This document shows, piece by piece, positions 6,235 to 54,100 of a stretch of 58,384 bases of DNA. A program made the translations under genes and the position numbers. The notes beneath the pieces are model-generated. The model did not search any database. It was not told the DNA's origin and worked only from the letters and a program-made list of their open reading frames with translations. Source of the stretch: Klebsormidium nitens. Lineage: Eukaryota > Plantae > Klebsormidiophyceae. Numbering within the stretch: position 1 is the first letter of the stretch; each line of letters begins with the position of its first letter. The DNA is taken from NCBI GenBank assembly GCA_000708835.1, contig DF237512.1:1-58384 (forward strand). Reading direction: 5' to 3'.

Positions 6235-9200
6235 AAGAGCACTGCCCTAAAGGCCTCACTCCACAGCCTTGCCGGCACAGCTATGGACAGCTTTGCGTCG
6301 TCTACCCTGCTCAGGTCGACGTTGAAGCCGCTCAACAGGATTGGGAGGAAGACCATTAGACTCTGGAGTCCGGAGTACCAGCCGAGGATCCGGAACTTCT
6401 TCAGAAAGCTGTTCACGGACTCCACAGCCGAGGTGTTGACCCATCGAAGAGCGTCGTAGTACTCCGTCGCGTTGCTGGGACCACATTTGTGCACCTCTGC
6501 CCCGGCTTTCGCATAATGGAACCTGCATGGAAGCGAACGCTGCATGAACAACCGCACAATCGCAACGCTCCCGCCCTTTGCCGGAATTACTCAGCCGCAC
6601 ATGAATCGACCTGCAGAAGCCGAAGCTTTTGATTGAGCAGACGCTTACCTGTCAACGACGAAGGTGACGGCGGAGAAGAACGCCGGCTCCCTTCGCATGC
6701 AATAATTCCTCAGCTGGCATGCATTGTCATAAACAACGAATTTGGGGAGATCCTCCCGGTCCTTGCGCGTGTACAAAACCGCGAACGCATCGCGGGGGCT
6801 CTCCCCTCGGAGGAAGAAGTGGAAGCCCGAGATGACCCGGTGCGGACAGCAAAAGACGAAGGCGCCCCGGCTGCGGTGGGGGCGCTTGCCCTTCTTCGTC
6901 GACTTGCTCCCCCCCTTGACCAGCCCCGGGACGTTCGCGGCGTCCCAGTCGCCCACCGTCTGCCCGGTAGCGCACTTGAACTCCTCTGACGTCCTGCTGC
7001 GTCCGTCCTCATGCTCGAAGGATGCGTATCGCGGCAAGCCCCGTCGCTGTTCCCACCCCGGCAGCGCGTAGTGCCCCAACACATCCTGCTCGGCTCTGAG
7101 GGTGTGCCCAGGAGGGAGCGGATGCATCCGGTCGCCCTCCTCGTCCCGCCCCAGCCGGCCGCGCAGCACCCCCCTCTCTAGCTCGCCCATGGCCTCCCAC
7201 TGCAGTACGTTAGGCTGCGAGCCCTCCACGCCCCGGAGCAGGTCTCGCGCGCTCGTCCGAGCCTCTGCCAGCGACGCGGCCTCCGCCTCCGTGAGCGGGC
7301 CCCGCTCCCGACTGAGGTGCTGCAGCTCGACCGCGCGCCCCAGCGGCCGCAGAGCGGCGACGACCCAGCTCTCTAGCAGTCCATCGCCGTAACCGGTGTT
7401 GCCGCGTGCCAGCAACGTGAGCTCGTAGAGGTGGTGCAGGGCGGGCAAAAGGAAGACGGGAAAGCGGTGCCCGCCCTGGGCGTCCAACACGCGGCGCAAG
7501 ATGGGAGAGTGCTCTCCGAGTTGGCGGCGGTCCTCGACGCTCGCGTCCCTCCCCAAGAGCAGCTCCCGAACCACAGCCAGCCCGTCGGAGTGGCCAATGA
7601 TGCCGTCATCCGAATCGTGCGCCCCAAGGTCATATAGCAATTCACCCCACTCACACGGCCAGTGCTCCCATAGACGCGGGCTCCCACCTCTTGCCGCTTG
7701 CTCGAGCTCGATTCCCTCCAACAGTCGCAGCATCGTCCGGTTCTTGTCCCGGACCATCTGGCGCTGCTCGACCAACAGCCGACGCCGAGTGTCCGCGGGC
7801 ACTGGACCCTCTCCATCCCCCGGAACGAACTTTGTCACGAGCAGCACATTTTCCCTGCCGAGGGCCCCCTTCAGACCCATGTACTCGGCCTCGCTCAGTG
7901 GCTGGCCGAGCTTCTCGCTCTCGGATCGATGCCTGGAGACGCGCGCAATCAACTCCCGCAGCTCCGGTTGCAATACCAAGCGCCGTTTCATGCCTCCACC
8001 CTCTAGCCCTGCTGCGCAATAGTCGCGCCCCGCAACCGATTGCTTCTCGAGCGCGGCACCGTCCACGGACCGCCCCGGATGCGTGAACGGCCTGCGGAAG
8101 TCGTGCGAGGTCGATCCCAGCCCTCCAGGGCGCTTTCCTCCGTCGGAGTTGGAAATTCCCACGATCCCATCGCTAAGTTCTTCTAAGGACCTGTGGGAGC
8201 CAGTGAGCCGGTTCATCAAATGATCCGTCACCCGGTAGAAGCAACATGTGCAAGGACTTGCGGGTTCCATCGAAAGCATGCCTTGAGTTGAGCAGGGAGG
8301 CCTGAGCCCTTTCCTGCTTTCAAAAGCATCTCAACTGCTATGCCCTTCCAAGCGGCCTTAACTTAAGCTCTTCTTCAATCAAGATGCTCACCTCCGGGTG
8401 CGGACCGCATATGCTGCAGCACTCCAGGATCTGCCGCCCCACCAGCCGGAAGAAATCAAGGCTGGCCTTCCGCCACGTCTCCTCGGATAGCACGGCGGAC
8501 TCTGGAGCCCTCCGGAAGGCCTCCTGCTGTCCCTCCAGCAGTGCCCCGAATCCCGACTGCCCCCGCTGCATCTGCTTCAGCAACAGTTGTAGGCTCTCCT
8601 GTACAACAATCGTCTGGCGGCTCCAAACGTACAGCCCCAAGTGCTCTCCGTCGAAGTGGATGGTGTGCTTCCTTGGGCACTTGCAAGAGTAGATTCTGGT
8701 GCGCACGGCCTGACTCCAAGTCGAGGCATGCACTACCGCGTCCTGCCAGAGTTCCACCCACTTCCCACCGCACGGAGGCGGTTCGAGAGGGCACGGCGCG
8801 CTCAGCATCCCGAGCTCGCCCAGCTCTTGGAAGTCCCTCCCCACCAGCTTGCTCACTCGAATCGGTCCGCATCTGAGCCGCATCACCCAAGGGTCGTGGA
8901 AGTCAGGCGCGTCGCTCAGCTGGCTCAACTTCGGCTTGGTCACTTGGACGGCCTGTGTCTCCTGAACCATGACGGGAGCCCTTCCTACCCCCCCGTGCTG
9001 GCACCCCCGCTGGGCACCCTCCAACGTGCAGCTGCCGCAGGAAGAAACCCAGCATCGGATTGCTTCCTTGCCCAGCGCCTCTGCGGGCGGCTCCCGCACA
9101 CTTTGGGGTGCCACAGTCAAAGGACCCCCGCCCGCATGACTCCTATACCACTGCTTGCTCCTGCGCACCCCCCGCCATGGCTCGCTCACGCCCAGCCCGT

Positions 9201-42547: not shown

Positions 42548-45500
42548 ATGGCGAAAAAGGCGAAGGCAGCTCCGGTAGGTCAACGGTTCCTCCCTTCTTT
42601 GTGGTGCTGCTTGGTTGTTTCATCTTTTTTTAAAGATTCGCCACTGCTTAGTTTGTGGGGCTGTGTAAGCCCTTTTTTAAAATTAAAGGACACAACGCTG
42701 TGCAAGAGTGAGTTGCAATTGTTGGGATTAGTCTTCATCTTTTTCTTTTGGTGTAGAATCTTTGTGAAAAGAAGTGGTAATGGCGGCGCTTCTTCTATTT
42801 GTGGCCAACTTTTGCACCACCCATCCATCGGCTTCTTAAAGAAGATTTCAATGTATCGAGGCAATGCACATTCCCATGTCGCCCTGATCTTTCTTTGTCG
42901 GTTCAGATTTACACCGCAAGTGACAAGCTGTAAATAATCCACATTAATGATTGTGATGGTGGTGCAGTATGTACTCACACTAATGCATGGTAATTCTTCA
43001 TATTTGTTGTGCTTCTCAGTTGACTGCTTCTCAGAAATCCGGTAATGGTGGTTGCCCCGCCAGCATTGGTCCCTTGCTGCAGGATGGTTCAAGTGGTTTT
43101 GCTGAGGGCTTCAATGTGATTGCCTGCTTGTTGACGATATTATTGAAGCATGCAAGCACCCCCCAGCTGGAACATATATGTCACATCAATTCCAACGGCT
43201 CATTATGTGTCTTGCAGGCTGCGGTTGCGGTGGCTGCGCCTCCCAAGAAGGGCAACAAGCGGCCGGCAGAGGAAGCCAGTAACGGCAAGGCGGCCAAGAA
43301 GAAGAAAGCCGAGAAGGCGCCCCCGGTGCCCCCTCCTTCATCAGAGGAAGAAGACTCCGATGAAGAGGTGCGCTGCATTACCAGCATATTCCTGAGGAAC
43401 TGCCGCAACAAATTCTGATCGGTTTCCCTCACATGACGAGCTTTGTGTCGTAGTCAAAGTGATCCATTCTGTCGCCTGTGCATTACCTGTTGAGATGCAT
43501 AGGTAATAATGTACGGTGTTTTGTCTCCTCTTCCTCCTGTGTCTGGCTTTGTAGGTGCAGATGCTACTCATTGTTGGTAGATTGCATTTCGTGGCTGTTG
43601 GCCTTTTTTGAGGCCAATGATTGTGGATGACCACTTCGGCCTTTTCCATCAGGAGCCTATTTTGCGGGCTGGGACTAGTACTGCGCTCTTGGAACATTGT
43701 CTCTGGTAATGGTTCAGCCGTTAGGGTTCTCTTGGTAATGCTTTCATCCTGTCTCGCTCCCCAAGTCCCACTTCCGTCACACCAAGCTTTTCATAGGGCA
43801 AGAGAAGGGGCGGTTTAGGGTTTTGATGGTAATGGTTGTAAACTAGGGTTCTGTATCAAAGTCAGGGGCAATGCTGATTTCCGATCCTCTCGTTGTCAGG
43901 AGGAGGTTGTGCCTGTGAAGAAGGCTCCCGCGGCCAAGGCCAAGGCTCCTGCCAAGAAGGAAGAGAGCAGTGACGAGGACGATGAGTCTGAAGAGGAGGA
44001 GCCAAAGAAGGTATCTTACCAAACCTTTAGAAAGGTTATGAAACACATTTGCATGCACCTCCCTCTGATTTCGTGCACCCTTTGTGCATCGCAGTGTGCT
44101 ATTTGTCACGAGCGCAAAAGTTTCGTTACTGATTCTAGTGGTGTACCACTCTGTTAATGTACAACCATTGAAAATAGGGCAGTTGCAAGGGCCTAGGAAA
44201 GGTGGTCAAGTTGTTGAAACTTCTAGGGGTCCCATGGAATTGGTGGTTGACATTATTTGCTTTCAATAGTTCCTTCCATATGAAGTTCTCTTGAGCAGAC
44301 TTTGAAAGAATTCTTACAAATTCTTTTTGCAAAGCTCCGAAGCGTTTGTATTGCTCTGGACAAGGTCTTTTCTTGAGAAATTTAAAAGAATACACTGCAC
44401 CACTTAATACAATAATCCACTTGTCTGATGCATTCCACCATCGAAGTCAAAACATGCAATTCAAAACGTGCAGTAGAAGGCAAAGAGGATTTTAGAATCT
44501 TTTGATTGCGTGCTTCTGACCGCTCCTTCCAACTCATCGCCTTTCTGTTTCTTCCAGCCTGCCGCTAAGGCTGCTGCCAAGCCTGCCGCCAAGCCGGCTG
44601 CTAAGGCTACCCCCATGGAAGTTGATGAGGACTCCGACGAAGACAGCGATGAAGACGAGGAAGAAGCTCCCAAGCCGGCCGCGAAGAAGCCGGTAGCAAA
44701 GAAGGTTGAAGAAGAGAGCGACGATGAGGACGATAGCGACGATGAAGAGGAGGAGGAGAAACCGGCGAAGGGAGCCCCTGCGAAAGCGGCGATTGCGAGG
44801 GCCGCTGCGAAGAAGGTAGAGGAGGACGAGGATGAGAGCGACGAGGAGAGTGACGAGAAGCCGAAGGCAGCGGCGGCGGCCGCGAAGAAGCCGGCGGCGA
44901 AGAAGGACGAGGAGAGCGATGAGGACGATGATGAGGACAGCGACGAGGAGGAGGAGGTGAGGTATCCTTGTGCGCGCTGGTGTAAATGTTCGCTTTCAAT
45001 TGATCTGCATTTTATTAGCTGGAATAGGTGGGGGCGAAGCGATGAAAGGTGCCAGTAGAGAACTGAGATTCTTCTTTTCTCTGAACGGTGTTACTTTTTT
45101 GTAGTGATAAGATGGTGGTATAGCTCGGGTTTTTCTCTAGTTTCCTGCTGCTCGACAGTTCGGGAATGCTTTGCGATAGAAACAAGAAGTGCTCCTTCTT
45201 TCCAGTATCACGTTTGCTTATCACTGATTGAGGTGGTCAGGCCTGCAATTTCGTCTCTACTTCAGATCTAAGGGGCTGCAATGATGACACACTATCCGCG
45301 CTTCCGAGGCTCACGCCCCTGAAGATAAGGATTATTGGTTGAATTTCTTCGTCTGAGCAACGCCCCTTCGTTTGTGAAGAAGAGCAGTTTTTTATGGTAT
45401 CCTTTTGACACACAGCTAACAAGGCTAGGCCCAAATGACTTTTGCAGCATTCTGTGGTCAGACATCTGCAGAGCTGCTCTGAAGGTGTTGAGATGGAGTT

Positions 45501-48500
45501 CTGATCAATCTTGTGGTTCATGCCCCAGTAATATCAGAAACGCGTCCCTATCAAATACGACGATAGTGCCGCTGCGAATGATTCTCATTCTCCTACTCAA
45601 TTTGAAGTTCTCTTTGTCGCCAGGCACCCAAGAAGCCCGCCGCCAAGCCCGCAGCGAAAAAGGCTGCTGACAGTGATGATGACGAGGACGATGATGAGGA
45701 TGATGATGACGAAGAGGAGGAGGAGAAGCCGAAGGCCAAAGCAACGCCGGCAAAGAAGGCTGACGAGGACGAGGAAGACGACGACGAGGACGATGAGGAT
45801 GAGGACGAGGATGACGAGGATGAGGTGAGGGGCGGTCATATGGGAAGGTCCTCAGAGTCGTTAGTCAGATGGTGGAGAGATCGGTGCAGCACCCGCAAGA
45901 TTGATTCTTGTTGACGATGCCCGGTGATTCTTTCTTTCCGTAAGGGGAGCTGTTCGACATTCGCAGTGAGTTAAGTGACCAGTGGGTTACTGGCTGTGCG
46001 AGGGCTAACTCAGTTGATAGCCTTTAAAAGCAGATTAAATAATTTACTGCTTTTAGGTGATGACGTGTCGCTTTTGACACCTTTTGGGCCACGGCCAGTC
46101 ATGTCCCGAAGAGGCCATTGGAGAGGTCTTGAAAACCTGTTAGTGGCTGGAGGTAGATGAGTTGTCAGTTGGAGTTGGTTGGAGACAGACAAAATAGTGG
46201 GAGTCGAAGTGCTGAGATGCGCGCAGCTCCTCTTTCTGTGAGTGTTGTGACCACCATTAGACCTACATTACACTTAACCGTGGGCAAACTTCGTTGGATC
46301 ACTGTGATCAGCACAGAAAGAGCATCTTTCACACGTATCTCTCAACCAGCCTACTCCAATCTGGACCAGAACCCTATCCTTCTTCCCAACAGGCGCCCAA
46401 GAAGAAGAGCTCCAATGGCAAAACTCCCGCTACGCCCAAGACCCCCGCCGCTGAGGAGGAGGAGGGCGGCAGCAGCACCATCTTTGTGAAGAACTTGGCA
46501 TGGAAAGCGGACCAGGACGCGCTGTTCGAGTTCTTCGGGGACTGCGGCGAGGTGACGGACGTCCGGATCGCGCAGGGCGACGATGGCAGGTCCCGCGGGT
46601 TCGGGCACATCGAGTTCGGCTCGCCGGCGGCGGCTAAGAAGGTGCGTGAGCGTTGTGAAGAGATTGTGGTTTGCAGTAACCTGGAAAGTAGACGCTGGTC
46701 GTGCTTCTATGGCTTCTTTTTCTGAGGCAGGGGTTTCGTGTGTTTGGCAAGGGCTTGTCGGACAGGCGCCGTTCTTGCGGTCAAGAGGTGTGTCACATAC
46801 TGGAGGGGTTCGGGATGGTTGCCGGCCTTCCTGGGCCGTCTCTGTGAGACAGGGAGTGGTTGCTTTGCCAGGATTCCGTATGGGAGGTCGCTTTCAACTT
46901 GAGCTGGAGCTTTGATGACACCAACGTTGGCATTCCTTGGGAAGGTTGTGCTGGTCGTGCAATGATGGCAGCCTGTGGCTGTCTGTGGCTGTCTACCAGG
47001 TTGTTCTTCTTTGTTGTGAGTGGCGGTCGGCGCGCAAGTAACACAAGCTGCGCTGCTCCTTGGAGGAGTTTTCAGCAGACCCCTGTTCCCTTCTGATTTC
47101 TGAGAAGAAGCTGACAGACCAACGTCCTGCTTACATCCCCTGTAAGCTTCTGCAAACGGACACATTTTTGGTTCGCTCCTAGAAGGCTCATAGGTTGTGG
47201 TGTTACTGCAGGCGCTGAAGAAGAGCGGGGAGGACCTGCTGGGGCGCGAGATCTTCGTTGACCTGGCGCAGGAGCGGGGGAACAAGACCTTCACGCCCAG
47301 AAGCGACAGGGGCAACTTCAGGTGAGCGCACGTACAGAAAGTTTCATCCCACACTCTTTGGGTAGTCGTGGAGGGGCGCACATATGGGCGCCCATAATGC
47401 GAGAAGGAAAGCACTCGATGAACGTATGAGCCACGCTAGAGCTAACAGCGAGCAGTAACCTCGTTAAAGAGATAACCAGTTTTTGTGCCAGCGTGCTTAG
47501 CCCCTTTCGGAAGTGTCGAACAAAATCTCGGAAGTGTCGAACAAAATCTAAACTCTGGATATTTTCTCTATCGTGTAGCGGCGGTAATGATGGCGGCGCT
47601 CGGACTCCTCGGGAGGGTCAGGACCGGACGGCCTTCGTCAAGAACTTCAACAAGTTTCAGGACGAGGACACGGTGAGTTGAAGAAATTGCGGCCTCAAGA
47701 GGAGTTGTGAAGCCGGGGGATGATTCAAAGGCCTGCCGCTCAGCAGATTGTTCAGTCTTCCGGCTCAGGTCTTGTTTGGAGGATTCCGTACTGGGCTCCC
47801 TGGTTTGTTCCTGTCTCCTTTTATTAACTTTACGGGCTTTAACGGCGGAGCCTGCAACTTCCGAGGCCTTTGTCCATATGCCAAACTTGTATGAAGACAC
47901 GAAGCTCGGTTTGGAGCTAAAGGCCAAAGCGAAGATTTCGAAACAGCATTCCGATTTCAGTCCAGATTTTAGTCTGAACGAAAGCCGATTTCCGCCAGCA
48001 ATTCCGACCATTATAGAGCGCTCCCAAATCTTCCCGTTTACCTGGCGGAGACCTGTCCGGACGATGTGCCTAGGTAGTTTTGGTACAACTTGAGTTCCGG
48101 CCAATAATTGGATCCGATTTGTCCCTCGCAGATCCGGAACCAGCTGACAGAGGCGTTTGGCGAGTGCGGTGAGGTCGTGAACGTGAGGATACCTACGGAC
48201 AGGGAGACCGGCCAGATCAAGGGGTGAGCTTCAGAACAGGGTCTTAGGTCAAGGCGTTTGTGTAGTCTCGATAATCACATCTTGCTGCTTTCATATCGCA
48301 GTCGGCAGAGAAACCGCTGCGTTTCGAGCCTTCTCCTCGTGAAGCGTGGAAGATTGCCGTTGCGAGTCAGGCTGCTGCCTGAAAATAGAAAATTCTTAGT
48401 TTAGTTCTTACAACGTCTTCAAGCTTTGAAGACATCGGGGTCTGGAATGTTATGGTTTGTTTACGGCCTCAAGGCTCGTGCCATTACTTGACAGTTGGTT

Positions 48501-49088
48501 GTTGCTGTATTTGCTGGGAGTTAGAAGCTATCATCATGCCGCAAAAACGGGGCTGAATTACCAAAAAACCGTGTGCTTCTTGAGGACAACATCCCGACTT
48601 GCTGCTGACCTGTAAAAAAGGAACCGCTGACTGGTCTTCGTCGAACTGTTCATCCTTGTTCAAACCCTTCTGACCACCCCCTGATCACATATCTCTAGTT
48701 GCTCAGCTCGTTACTCAATTTTTTCTCCGTGTCCATTTCCAGTTTCGCCTTCGTCGAGTTCAGCAGCACCGACGCCCTCGCCAAGGCTGCCGACGTGAAC
48801 GGCGCTGACGTCGGCGGGCGCAGCATCGTCGTTGACACCAACCCCAGTGGGGGCGGTGGCGGCGGCGGCGGTAGCGGTGGGTTCAGGGGGGGACGTGGTG
48901 GTGACAGAGGGGGTCGCGGTGGTTTCCGGGGGGGACGCGGAGACAGAGGCGGAAGGGGCGGCCGTGGGGGGGACAGGGGTCGCGGCAGGGGGGGAGGTCG
49001 CGGGGGCGGCAGGGGGTTCACCCCTAACAAGCCCAGAATCAACGTAGACGGCGGGGGCAGCGGTAAGAAGATTGCGTTTGACGATTAG
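42548..49088 (+). CDS. NUC1: Nucleolin (acidic/basic N-terminal repeats, two RRMs, GAR domain), about 10 exons
   Basis: MAKKAKAAP | ...KKGNKRPAEE...; D/E-rich blocks alternating with KKPAAK; RRM1 TIFVKNLAW...RGFGHIEF; RRM2 TAFVKNF...KG|FAFVEF; RGG repeats; terminal GKKIAFDD*. Confidence 0.95.
45275..45362 (+). ncRNA. Intronic box C/D snoRNA, U36/snR47-like
   Basis: Box C ATGATGA at 45281, D' CTGA at 45319, box D CTGA at 45353, short terminal stem. The 16-nt guide TTGGTTGAATTTCTTC (45335-45350) is complementary to the conserved LSU rRNA sequence GAAGAAAUUCAACCAA. Confidence 0.85.
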
Positions 49089-49333
49089 GTTTGGTGAAGC
49101 GACGGAGAGGGGGTTTTGGGGCGGGGGGGTGCGGAAGATTTGTTGCGTGTTCTGATTTGAGCTTTCATTTTATAGTTCGCTTGTAGGGTCGTTCAAGTCA
49201 TTTATAGTTCAGTCACCGCCCGGCTGGCGGGCGTCCATAATTAGAGCAGTGCCTGAGGCATGGTGCGTTATCCAGTTCAAGCGGTGGTCGGCGCTTGAAG
49301 AGAAAAATGGGTACGTATGGGGACGGGGTTCCC

Positions 49334-49611
49334 GTGAGCGGGGCGAAGGACCACTCCGGCAGCACTTTCGATATCTGAGCTTTCATCGTGAACAATGCCG
49401 GGCGAAAGTCCCCGGGCGACAAGGTCGAGAGGACCAGCCTTAGCAGGCAGACCTCCATACGACCCCTCGCGGGGGCCCCCGGGCCCCCGGGCTGAGATGC
49501 GCAAGCGGAGCCTCGTCGAGGGGTCATGGAGCAGCTCGCCATAGCACAGTAATGTGGGTCAGTGGGGACGCAACCCACCAACACAATGGGGCTTACTCTT
49601 GCCATGCTCAC
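49334..49611 (+). ncRNA. RNase MRP RNA
   Basis: P4 5' strand GAAAGTCCCC (49404) and 3' strand ACACAATGGGGCTTAC (49581). GARAR pentaloop hairpin GGTC-GAGAG-GACC (49423-49435). P1 GTGAGC.../...GCTCAC, P3 CCGGCA...TGCCGG, P19 GTGGG...CCCAC, and a long P10/12-like stem CTCCAT..GACCCCTCG/CGAGGGGTC.ATGGAG. Confidence 0.9.
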
Positions 49612-50090
49612 AAACCCTTCCCTTAATACAATCTCTTCATAAATCTGCTTCCCAGCTGTCATCTCATATCTTGGTCAGATTTGTCCGCACCACGGTGCTC
49701 GCTGATGATCATGGCCCTTGATAAGTAATCTGGTGCTACTTGTTCCAGTGTGTCATGTGCAAATAGGGGCGCAAAAAGGCTGTTGAGTCTCGAAAGCAAA
49801 ACTGGTGGTTGATGAAAACATGCAGATCCACGGCAGTCGATTGTCATTGACTTGGGAAAGCTTGTGAACCGGGCACATGGCTGGGCAATGGATCTCCAAT
49901 GAGCACCGTTAGAACTCGGCTTATGAGTGGATTGGCCGATCGTGATCCTAGCCTTGGCTGAATCGGATCGATCTTAAACCTCATCTTGCAAGACGGTATA
50001 AGTAATAACCAATATTAGATCGATGCTACCGTCCATATGATATGTGGCATGCATGCGAGCTCCATGATTGTATCCTTTTGTGCAGTAGAG

Positions 50091-50444
50091 TATGTGATTT
50101 CACTAGTTTCAACTGCAACGTAGGCGTGACATCACCGGTACCTACGGTGAACAGTGCGGCGGTACGCTACCGTGTCGAATATGGTCGGTACCGTGCAGTG
50201 TTCAACCGGGCACTCGATTGCAGGGAGACGGAGTGCTCGGGGTATGTTAGGGTTACTAGAGGGCAACCGACTGATCTTGGTCGGGTTAGTTGGGGGGTTA
50301 GGGTGGGTACGGGCGGGCTGTGGCGGAACGCCTTAGGGTATCTTCAAAACCCGGTTACTGAGCTCTCAGTTTGACCTTAGGGTTTTAAGTTTGGCAGGTC
50401 CTTAACTATGATGACGTCGCAGTTGAAACTAGTGAAGTTACATA
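50091..50444. mobile_element. MITE-like element with ~31-bp terminal inverted repeats
   Basis: TATGTGATTTCACTAGTTTCAACTGCAACGT (50091-50121) versus the reverse complement of 50414-50444, TATGTAACTTCACTAGTTTCAACTGCGACGT (3 mismatches). Non-coding interior; no clear TSD. Confidence 0.7.
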
Positions 50445-51176
50445 CCTACGTCCTTTTGTGATACACCCCGGCTCGCATGCAAATACATGGCGTGTCACAG
50501 ATGATATGCCGCTGTTCCAGCGAGCCTAGCTCTCTGCCAGATGCGCATCATGGTCATTCGCCTTATCAGAAATGCATGCTCGCACGTCCTTTGAAGGTCA
50601 CGTGCATGTTGTAGCACACAACCGTCCCTTCACATGTAATTTCGATCCCCTCAAGTTCGACATCAATCCGATATATACAGTGACCGAGATCGGACGGTCG
50701 AGCTGCCAGCATGTGCAACTTGTGCACCGTATCAAGCATTCGCTCAGCATGCAGCTAATGAACCCGGCGAGATTGTTAGTTCCAGCGGCCTCTAATGCTC
50801 CCAAAGTCGATAAAGATTGACCCGGCTGAGCAACGTGGCCAACATTTACTTGGCATTCCGTACATGCTAAAAACGTTACAGACGAGTTCGTCTTCGTGGT
50901 CTCATGGCTATCTAACCTCCACAAGACTTCTCTTGCTTTCAAGCTTATCTGGCGACTTTTGCGGCCCGTCACCAATAAAAAAAGGTTCATGGTACTACAA
51001 ACCAGACAGATGTCTAGCCAAAGAATGTATTCAAGATTGTCTTGGTCAAAATCAGCAACACAATTACACTTGCTCAGTGGCTATTTTCCAACCATCTTAT
51101 CATAATCAAGCGAAACAGAGAGCTGTTGTATCCTACCTATATTTTAGCGTACAGCGCCTTTATTGATTCCGTCTCT

Positions 51177-54100
51177 TCAGTCAGAGTCTGACCAGAAATC
51201 CGATTTCCGAACGTCGCCGTCTAGCATACAGGAGCAGGCTGCCACAATGGTGTCATCCTCGTCACACGCAAACAGGTCGACCTGCAATGGCACAACGAGT
51301 TCTTGTGAGCTAGCAGCACCTTTGGTATAGATGGCATAGGCACGCACTAGGCTGTCGTCGAAAGCCGACGAGACTCTGCCAACTTCCCTTCGAGGCAATT
51401 AGGGGAATGCCTAGATCAGTCCCGGCCAAGAGTTGAAAGCACCATAAAGGAGATAACCTGAGTCGCCTCGCGGAATCCTCTCTCAGCGAAGCCTACAATC
51501 ACTAACCAATAACCTTTGTGCGTTTGGTCGAAGGCCGGAAATGATGACGAGGGGAAGCTACGAAGAAGCAAAATCACGTATCTCCGCAGGACGGTTGGCC
51601 TTGCTTACCATTGAAGGGTCTTCCAGTAGCTTCCGCGCAACAAGGAACCCTGCAATCGTCCACGTCTGGAACTTGCGGGCCTGCTTCCCGACGTAGCTGC
51701 AATCAATAAAAGACGCTTCAGGGTTCGGAAAGAATTTCACGTGGAGTTTCTTTTGGCAGCCCAGCAACGGCAAAGAGCAGCCACCGCAGTGCGTTGGTCC
51801 AGTCGCTTGTCTCTGTTTAAAGGAACTGAGTCTGGATGAAATTCAATGAAAACCAGTGGGGCCTGTGCAATGTTCGTAGTGGATGTTCCGCCCTGCTGTA
51901 GTGCACCAGTATTGAGGAGCGTCGCTCCTTGTTCTATGATGATTGCAAGCGGGAAAACCCATCTCGCTTCAGACCCCGCTTTCCTCCTTCAAATGCACCT
52001 TCCTGGGCAGCGCACAGATGACATCACCCCTTCGTAAAAGAGAGAACGAACAGTCCATGCTGAAACGCCACTCACTTCCCCTTGACGCCGTCAAAGTACT
52101 CGGGCCAGCCCAACTGCGCCAGCTTCTTTTCCGCTTGGTCCAGCGCACGCTGCGCCAGCTCGGGCCGCCCCCCCTTGATGCACGCGGCCGTGAAGTGCCA
52201 CAGGAGCGTCGGCCAGGAGCCGCCGTTGTGGTACGACCACGCAGTGTTCTGGGGGGGGTGAACAATTTGAAGTTTTGAGGGGGGTGGGGGGGGAGACAAA
52301 GTTCCCGAATACTTCGTGCCTCCAGTGGACGAAACCTTCGATCTATGAACTGTGACTTTCAATCAGCTTCGGATGCAGCCGGCTTTAAGATGCCGTTCAA
52401 ACTTCGCTTGACGGAAGACGTTCACCGATCGACCCTAAGGGACTGTGGGAGGCGGTGACTCGAATCGGGCGTGCTGATACGATCCTGCGTACGTACGTCC
52501 TGTCAACATCGACCAGCGTGGAGCCGGCGGTTCGGGCTAGGATGAAAGCAATAACGGTGTGGGAGTCCACTGGGTACGTGACCAGAAGCTACTTTACTGC
52601 TTCCTGGTGAAGCATGTTGCGATAAAGAAGGATAAGATGATGAAACCTGCCTCTTTCATGACTCCCCTGGCTTGCCTAGACGAAAGACAAGGATCGAAAA
52701 GAGAATGTAGAAGTATACAAGGGCCAACACAAGAAGAGGGTTTCCGTGGATGCGACTTCCTCCGTTCAAAGATTCACGTCCAGTATTCTCGACCAACCAA
52801 CCTTCCTATTAAAGGCACTCCACTCTCTGGGCAGTCAGGTAACAAACCAGATCACAGACCAATAGCGTACATATCGCGTACATATCGCGTCATCTTTTTG
52901 ACACGATAAACCGATGGCAGCGCTGAATCTGCAGGAGATTCTCTCACCTTGGGATCGCACCCAGTGACGATGCGCCACTCCTCCCCAACCATTGCTGGGT
53001 AGCAGATCTTGAGCGGCATGTCGGCGATCAGGTCCACCCACTTCTGTTCGTACAAGTCCAGAATGGCGCCCGTCTGCTCGCGGGTCGCCAGTGACGACAG
53101 GATCGCCCAGCAGTTGCCCAATGTGAATACCCGGAAGTCGAGCTGCGCGGGAGCGACGCCGCCAATGAAGTAGCCTGGACAGGAAATGAATGCGGGTTGA
53201 AGGAATCTAGGACTACTTGAAACATAGAGCGGCGGGTTTTCGCTGTGGATGCTGGACAAGGAATGTCCACTCAGGATTATCAGCGAGCTAAGAGAAAAGG
53301 TGACTTCGACACAAATTGGCAGCTGTGGATTGGGCAATCTGCGCACAAAGCTTTGGGGGAAATGCGTATCCCCAGAATCTATGAGGCATTTTCTCAGAGC
53401 GAACACGAGAATATTCTTACGCACCCTATGCTCTCGACCCTCCGTAATGCACGGCAGCAGTACTCTGCTCACCGGATCTGACGCCCAGACAAAACGCCCA
53501 AACCATCGTCTTCAGATATCTTCATTTCCTGAACACAACATCTGGAACGAAGCGGGAAAACGAAGCGGAAAAAGCGGGTAAGCATCACTCACCTCCCTTC
53601 TCCGGCATCCAGTCCATGAGCCACGTGGGAAGACTGTCCGGGTACACATTGAACTTGTTTGCGGCGTCCTCGCTGTACTCTTCCGTCTGGTACCGATAAA
53701 TCTCGTTCAGCCGCTCGAAGTCGAGCCAGTAGTACTGCCGCAGGTGGAACGACAGCGCGCTTAACCGGGCGGTAATCGCGTTCAGTAACCCCTGGTTATC
53801 CTCCGGGGTTAGCATCTCTCGGGCACACCGAAGGGCTGCGTAGTACAGCGACTGGATTTCAAGGGGATGCCCGTCAACGCCCATGCGGCGGTCAATCATG
53901 CAGGAGCCGTCAGGAACCTAGATGGGAAGCAGGTACTGGGTTAAGCATGTTCGTTGAGGACGAGTATGCTGGTTCGTAAGTGGATTGCGGTGGTCGTTTT
54001 ACGCCCGGCCGTCGATCATGCACGAGCCGTTGGGGACCGGGCAAAGAAGAAGTGCACTCAGATTGAAAACTGGTTTCGTCAGGTTGGCGATCGGGTCAGA

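Follow-up and report, generated by a model that had tools for sequence, protein, structure and literature searches.

In the 58,384-nucleotide stretch of Klebsormidium nitens DNA analysed here (the window), a real and conserved RNase MRP RNA follows a nucleolin stop codon on the same strand, and assembled RNA runs from the nucleolin coding sequence into it without splicing. On balance we think it probable, if by a modest measure, that this MRP RNA gene is housed inside the unspliced nucleolin 3' UTR, 5' of the sole recognisable poly(A) signal, and that the RNA is cut from an RNA polymerase II (Pol II) transcript. MRP RNA is usually made from a stand-alone RNA polymerase III (Pol III) gene. A full-text literature search turned up no account of a protein-coding gene that hosts an MRP RNA, and its placement within an mRNA 3' UTR is, in the literature searched, a layout not described for this RNA.

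The initial annotation had placed a complete MRP RNA 3' of the nucleolin stop and had named an Infernal search with the RNase_MRP model as the way to check it. This part held: the Rfam scan of the window gave a match to RF00030 (RNase_MRP) at 49336-49608 (+) that covers the entire model (1-266 of 266) and scores 94.2 bits, where the gathering score is 50 (E 5e-25), on the same strand as nucleolin and separated from its stop codon by 245-247 nt. MRP RNA is distinguished from RNase P RNA by mCR-I and mCR-V, the strands of the P4 pseudoknot, together with a GARAR loop, L8 (PMC4287351), and all three are present in the window RNA: mCR-I reads GAAAGTCCCCGG (49404-49415), mCR-V reads AATGGGGCTTA (49585-49595), and the L8 loop GAGAG (49427-49431) sits atop a GGTC/GACC stem. 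Since conservation against a related species begins at exactly GTGAGCG (49334) and includes GCTCAC (49606-49611), P1 is two pairs longer than the Rfam match, the extra pairs being formed by GU (49334-35) with AC (49610-11), which are conserved in the relative. The features of the locus are collected in Table 1.

Table 1. Features of the nucleolin-MRP locus in the window, with identity to the related species where aligned
Feature	Position	Strand	Basis or remark	Identity to relative
U36a-type box C/D snoRNA, in nucleolin intron	45276-45360	+	RF01302, 56 bits	
Nucleolin exons	47210-47319, 47577-47671, 48131-48222	+	GT..AG joints in RNA contigs	
Last nucleolin coding exon (RRM2 end and glycine/arginine-rich tail)	48742-49088	+	ORF translation, joint 48222^48742	
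Nucleolin coding end and stop codon				83%
3' UTR spacer, stop codon to MRP RNA	49089-49333	+	RNA contigs gapless: X14 49032-49655, X9 49010-49589	
Spacer segment	49089-49150			61%
G-quadruplex-capable G-run GGGGGTTTTGGGGCGGGGGGG	49109-49129	+	Regular-expression match, window and relative (L021 reverse complement 50-75)	
Spacer segment	49151-49223			43%
Conserved island in UTR	49224-49270	+	64-110 nt upstream of MRP RNA; flanking sequence 43% and 30%	70%
Spacer segment	49271-49333			30%, random level
Proposed intron donor GTACGT	49311-49316	+	No joint; aligned sequence in relative differs	
RNase MRP RNA	49334-49611	+	Rfam match 49336-49608 plus two conserved extra P1 pairs	93%
Conserved trailer AAACCCTTCCCTTAATACAA with AATACA (49625-49630)	49612-49631	+	18/19 positions identical to relative	95%
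Sequence beyond trailer	Beyond 49631			47-50%
Second poly(A)-signal-like hexamer CATAAA	49638-49643	+	Window only	
Furthest RNA-contig ends and proposed acceptor TTCCCAG (49649-49655)	49649-49663	+	Contig ends	
Convergent alkaline/neutral invertase mRNA, 3' end	50806-51696	-	Contig ends 50806-50891, intron 51279^51607	

The comparison was made with a single relative, whose sequence comes from assemblies of two sister metagenome samples. The exon encoding RRM1, used as a phmmer query, led to an ORF (P0009, 89% identical) on a 36-kb JGI metagenome contig (L019). On this contig lies the nucleolin orthologue, whose exons are 77-89% identical to those of the window and which has a U36a snoRNA in the same intron (8640-8725, 61.5 bits); the contig breaks within the glycine/arginine-rich repeat. 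A search with a chance ORF antisense to the MRP RNA led to P0270, encoded on a contig of 188 kb that was assembled from the sister sample (locus L021), and the reverse complement of this locus opens with AAGAAGATCTCCTTTGATGATTAG, which encodes KKISFDD and the stop codon. In the window the nucleolin frame closes with KKIAFDD followed by TAG (49086-49088), and the C-terminus KKI(A/S)FDD is therefore kept in the relative. From there the order in L021 is nucleolin stop, about 256 nt, MRP RNA on the same strand and then a convergent invertase, as in the window; a search for relatives with the invertase ORF found only one 1.2-kb contig of a relative. The synteny that the initial annotation had suggested examining is thus preserved in the related species. 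It was not seen in three more distant ones, where no MRP RNA was found within 5-6 kb of nucleolin (Sphagnum troendelagicum, Coccomyxa sp. Obi and Micractinium tetrahymenae; L020, L022 and L023, respectively), from which we conclude that the nucleolin-MRP linkage is lineage-restricted and arose within the lineage of the window organism. An 11-mer, TGAGCTTTCAT, repeated in the window at 49158 and 49376, is absent from the relative and was treated as chance.

To examine transcription, we placed Logan contigs from four RNA runs belonging to four studies (X1, X4, X9 and X14) on positions 46900-51900; such contigs are assembled RNA rather than reads, and carry no local depth profile, strand or single-molecule linkage. 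Joints of the GT..AG type were found in nucleolin at a depth of about 87-1160: each run has 47319^47577 and 47671^48131, and all but one also have 48222^48742. Since the introns of nucleolin and of the opposite-strand invertase are spliced in the contigs, the runs represent spliced RNA. In each run a contig spans MRP sequence unspliced: X14 at 49032-49655 (depth 61, exon contig 87), X9 at 49010-49589 (185, exon contig 423), X1 at 49238-49663 (471, exon contig 849) and X4 at 49151-49591 (873, exon contig 1161), so that, across the four studies, contigs bearing the MRP RNA reach 0.44-0.75 of the exon-contig depth. Retained-intron contigs in the same runs reach a depth of only 5-14, and the far higher depths across the MRP RNA are for this reason not pre-mRNA or DNA background. 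Between the stop codon and about position 49660, sequence is thus present in RNA at mRNA-like depth. The X14 and X9 contigs begin within the nucleolin coding sequence and reach into the MRP RNA or beyond it, which places it in the 3' UTR on the same strand and is consistent with a precursor that holds both the ORF and the MRP RNA, the contigs being assemblies and not single molecules. More widely, all 16 of the 31-mers sampled from 49150-49345 occur in every one of the 20 RNA runs listed that hold this stretch (eight studies).

The placement of poly(A) signals fits an mRNA that extends through the MRP RNA. From the nucleolin stop to the start of the MRP RNA, neither species has a hexamer that matches AATAAA with at most one mismatch; the earliest such hexamer downstream of the stop is AATACA in both, 14 nt past P1 and within the conserved trailer. 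The 3' ends of the contigs range over 49589-49663, the furthest (49655 in X14 and 49663 in X1) falling 12-38 nt after the AATACA and CATAAA hexamers, and no contig extends past 49663. The nucleolin-MRP contigs carry no poly(A) tails; neither do the contigs of the invertase mRNA, whose ends are scattered in like manner.

Two further features of the contig ends are recorded here. The X4 and X9 contigs stop at 49589-49591, inside mCR-V of the MRP RNA, and X1 and X4 contigs begin at 49151-49156, one of them directly after Illumina adapter sequence; these stops (49589/49591) and starts (49151/49156) could each be due to base modification, to processing at that point or to faulty assembly. A processing helix between the 5' and 3' flanks was also considered and dropped: the minimum free energy fold does extend P1 into the flanks, but the duplex scores -24.6 against a shuffle mean of -20.7, with 15% of shuffles equally good, and the trailer does not have the same best partner in the window and in the relative.

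Canonical plant and animal MRP RNA genes have a type-3 promoter, comprising a USE or PSE and a TATA box, and a T-run terminator. The window RNA is like them in being the same RNA with every conserved structural element, and unlike them in that it has no TATA box, recognisable USE or T-run and is not free-standing, lying instead 245 nt past a stop codon on the same strand. Upstream of the MRP RNA the window shows neither a TATA box nor a published USE core (CCCAYA-type), a comparison with published cores from which the host's own USE may differ, and no run of at least four Ts occurs from the 3' end of the RNA until 50076, 465 nt downstream. Neither of the canonical type-3 marks, a TATA box about 30 nt upstream and a 3' T-run, is therefore present, and the 63 nt directly upstream (-1 to -63) are 30% identical to the relative. 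As controls we used 18 metagenome MRP loci fetched with an mCR-I plus mCR-V pattern, a scan that did not pick up the related species: 15 of these have a run of T4-T10, at 2-7 nt from the 3' end in 12 and at 24-25 nt in three, many also have a TATA box near -30, and none has nucleolin upstream of the MRP RNA (tblastn). The motif search and the control loci together bear out the initial annotation, which had reported neither a recognisable plant USE or TATA box nor an oligo-T terminator. A tRNA-like or A/B-box leader promoter was tried and rejected, as ARAGORN found no tRNA in the window and a permissive Rfam scan of 48900-50300 returned only the MRP RNA.

The sole conserved element upstream of the MRP RNA is the island at 49224-49270, and it is the candidate promoter element in the most serious alternative, which we regard as possible but clearly the less likely account: that the gene for the MRP RNA is independent and driven from within the nucleolin 3' UTR by a lineage-specific promoter of its own, be it a Pol II promoter of the TATA-less snRNA type or an unusual one for Pol III, with the island as upstream element and the read-through from nucleolin as a passenger. 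The island is 70% identical where its surroundings are 30-43% identical, and the starts of X1 and X4 contigs at 49151-49156 and 49238 could mark a separate 5' end. Green-algal type-3 promoters are reported to differ from those of land plants, TATA-less ones being read as Pol II targets (PMC8287931). MRP RNA also comes from an independent Pol III gene in every animal surveyed (PMC4287351) and at most of our control loci. Against a promoter element, however, the distance from island to RNA shifts by about 7 nt between the species, the 63 nt between them are unconserved, and the island matches no known USE consensus. Nor is there a T-run terminator in the window; the relative has a T5, 62 nt past P1, which aligns to nothing there. 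The depth of the MRP contigs also follows that of the nucleolin exons in four studies, and the tight same-strand placement after the stop codon has been kept despite a spacer that has diverged to random level, both of which argue against this alternative.

We think it improbable that the UTR copy is non-functional or redundant, for example a retro-inserted pseudogene, with a working MRP gene elsewhere in the genome. Small structured RNAs do spawn dispersed copies, and the MRP search covered 58 kb of this genome; the match is nevertheless full-length, and the copy in the relative scores 99.4 bits (RF00030) at the orthologous position. The two RNAs are 93% identical between flanks that have diverged to random level, and the 19 differences break none of the 83 predicted pairs in the two species. 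They include two compensatory changes (P8 U-A to C-G at 49425/49433, the other in P12) and one G-C to G-U. From the identity, the unbroken pairs and the two compensatory changes, we conclude that the MRP RNA is under selection in both species and that its position is orthologous; because of this pattern of conservation, a pseudogene appears unlikely.

The initial annotation had placed the MRP RNA within a 3'-UTR intron (49311-49655), from which it would be released by splicing and through which nucleolin mRNA would be exposed to NMD. Its motifs are all where it put them, with GG|GTACGT (the G of GT at 49311), a branch-like CTTAAT at 49622-49627 and a TTCCCAG ending at 49655, and insect intronic RNase P RNA provides a precedent (PMC4287351). 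As the brackets of an intron, however, they find no support. The joint 49310^49656, which the initial annotation had proposed to look for in RNA-seq, was not found in the contigs of the four RNA runs, which do show the other nucleolin introns; contigs cross the donor unspliced at high depth and stop at the supposed acceptor. Depth is zero over 49739-50072 in all four runs, which leaves no downstream exon for an intron ending at 49655. The donor hexamer is absent from the aligned position in the relative, the acceptor CAG is CTG there, and a GT...AG pair at 345 nt spacing is a chance expectation. A dominant spliced nucleolin mRNA with 49310^49656 is excluded, while rare forms can escape contigs; release of the MRP RNA by splicing is contradicted, as is the exposure to NMD that would have come with the intron, and we give this account very little chance of being right.

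What stands of the one-transcript unit envisaged in the initial annotation is the grouping of the MRP RNA with nucleolin and a U36-type snoRNA, without Pol III signals; what falls is splicing as the means of release. Contigs that join the coding end to the MRP RNA, a spacer present in 20 runs and a linkage conserved in the relative all point to a single unit. In the reading that we prefer, in which the MRP RNA is cut from the nucleolin transcript, Pol II would transcribe nucleolin, spacer and MRP RNA as one unit, with cleavage of the transcript about 45-50 nt past the MRP RNA (49655-49663), as the assembled RNA indicates. Part of the transcripts would then stay whole and serve as nucleolin mRNA bearing MRP sequence, while others may be cut within the spacer of 245 nt. 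The mature RNA would then arise by trimming from both sides, in the 5'-to-3' direction as far as P1 and in the 3'-to-5' direction from the site of poly(A) cleavage to P1, with bound RNase MRP proteins presumably defining the ends. By analogy with the intronic RNase P RNA of Drosophila, which is trimmed by Rat1/Xrn2 and the exosome (PMC6797745), and with the cutting and trimming route proposed for the Ustilago telomerase RNA in the Emi1 3' UTR (PMC9564094), the working MRP RNA would in this way be excised from the nucleolin Pol II transcript. A transcript from which the MRP RNA is excised loses its poly(A) tail, and a given primary transcript would therefore yield either nucleolin mRNA or MRP RNA. 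The outputs of two pre-rRNA processing factors, and of the intronic U36 snoRNA, would thereby be tied together. That the nucleolin pre-mRNA is the only source of MRP RNA in this lineage, each transcript becoming either nucleolin mRNA or excised MRP RNA, is a larger claim that we hold tentatively, at slightly below an even chance.

Several known systems resemble this arrangement in part. In insects and crustaceans RNase P RNA is intronic, whereas the MRP RNA of every animal examined has retained its Pol III signals (Manivannan et al. 2015, PMC4287351). These intronic RNAs (PMC4287351; Palsule et al. 2019, PMC6797745) share with the window RNA a P/MRP-family membership, the loss of Pol III signals, a sense orientation within a Pol II protein-coding gene and the requirement for trimming from a host transcript; they differ in that they lie in spliced introns of animals, whereas here it is MRP RNA that lies in the unspliced 3' UTR of a green alga. 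The telomerase RNA of Ustilago maydis (UmTER), in the 3' UTR of Emi1 mRNA (Logeswaran et al. 2022, PMC9564094), is likewise an essential RNP RNA located past a stop codon, and likewise its production is expected to cost the mRNA its tail, although it belongs to another RNA family and another kingdom. The case for UmTER was made by experiment, with a capped and polyadenylated precursor, a 5' monophosphate and the processing of recombinant precursor (PMC9564094), where ours is built on assembled contigs and conservation. The window RNA is also like the snoRNAs housed in introns of ribosome-biogenesis genes, of which the U36a of this very gene is one, in that a nucleolar RNA and a nucleolar protein share one Pol II unit; those snoRNAs are freed from spliced introns by exonucleolytic trimming, while the MRP RNA is part of an exonic UTR.

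If the nucleolin pre-mRNA is indeed the sole source, the locus would hold the first MRP RNA known from an mRNA, with a switch from Pol III to Pol II independent of that of insect RNase P RNA, and one promoter would set the ratio of a pre-rRNA chaperone, the RNA of a pre-rRNA endonuclease and the U36 methylation guide. An MRP RNA within an mRNA 3' UTR would be the second independent transfer of a P/MRP-family ribozyme to Pol II. It would also join the Ustilago telomerase RNA as the second essential RNP RNA to be excised from a coding mRNA. Because the host, nucleolin, is itself a pre-rRNA processing factor that also hosts an rRNA-methylation guide, the locus offers a test of co-transcriptional balancing of ribosome-biogenesis components. 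For annotation, there is a simpler warning, which is that matches to P or MRP RNA should not be thrown out when they come without Pol III signals.

U36/SNORD36-family C/D snoRNAs lie in a nucleolin intron in the window, in the relative (L019, 8640-8725) and in the chlorophyte Micractinium tetrahymenae (L023, 9631-9711). Because the Micractinium nucleolin gene also hosts one, this suggests that the hosting of U36/SNORD36 by nucleolin is an old host-guest relation in green algae, older than the MRP linkage.

Nucleolin binds G-quadruplexes. The G-run GGGGGTTTTGGGGCGGGGGGG lies about 20 nt 3' of the nucleolin stop, in a region across which X1 and X4 RNA contigs are absent, and because of this binding it may be an autoregulatory element of nucleolin. 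On the far side of the locus, homologues of the convergent invertase carry Pfam Glyco_hydro_100. Between the two genes, at 50080-50266, RNA contigs of three runs are about 95% identical to the window (9 differences) and then continue into unrelated sequence, which implies an expressed paralogue or repeat copy elsewhere in the genome.

Among the metagenome loci, one GC-rich MRP RNA of 348 nt (L017, 782-1129 on the minus strand) is likewise without TATA box and T-run; its flanks, agtcgtgt and acacgact, add eight perfect pairs to P1, and a divergent ORF begins about 240 nt upstream. Five others (L001, L002, L007, L008 and L014) have Pol III-type small RNA genes beside the MRP RNA, in or near ribosomal DNA. 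After the end of the LSU rRNA, L001 has RNase P RNA, MRP RNA and 5S rRNA in that order, while L008 reads LSU rRNA, RNase P RNA, MRP RNA; L002 reads RNase P RNA, MRP RNA, 5S rRNA; L007 has MRP RNA and 5S rRNA followed by the start of the SSU rRNA; and L014 has MRP RNA and 5S rRNA only. Taken together, the five contigs suggest that the rDNA spacer is where these small RNA genes are located.
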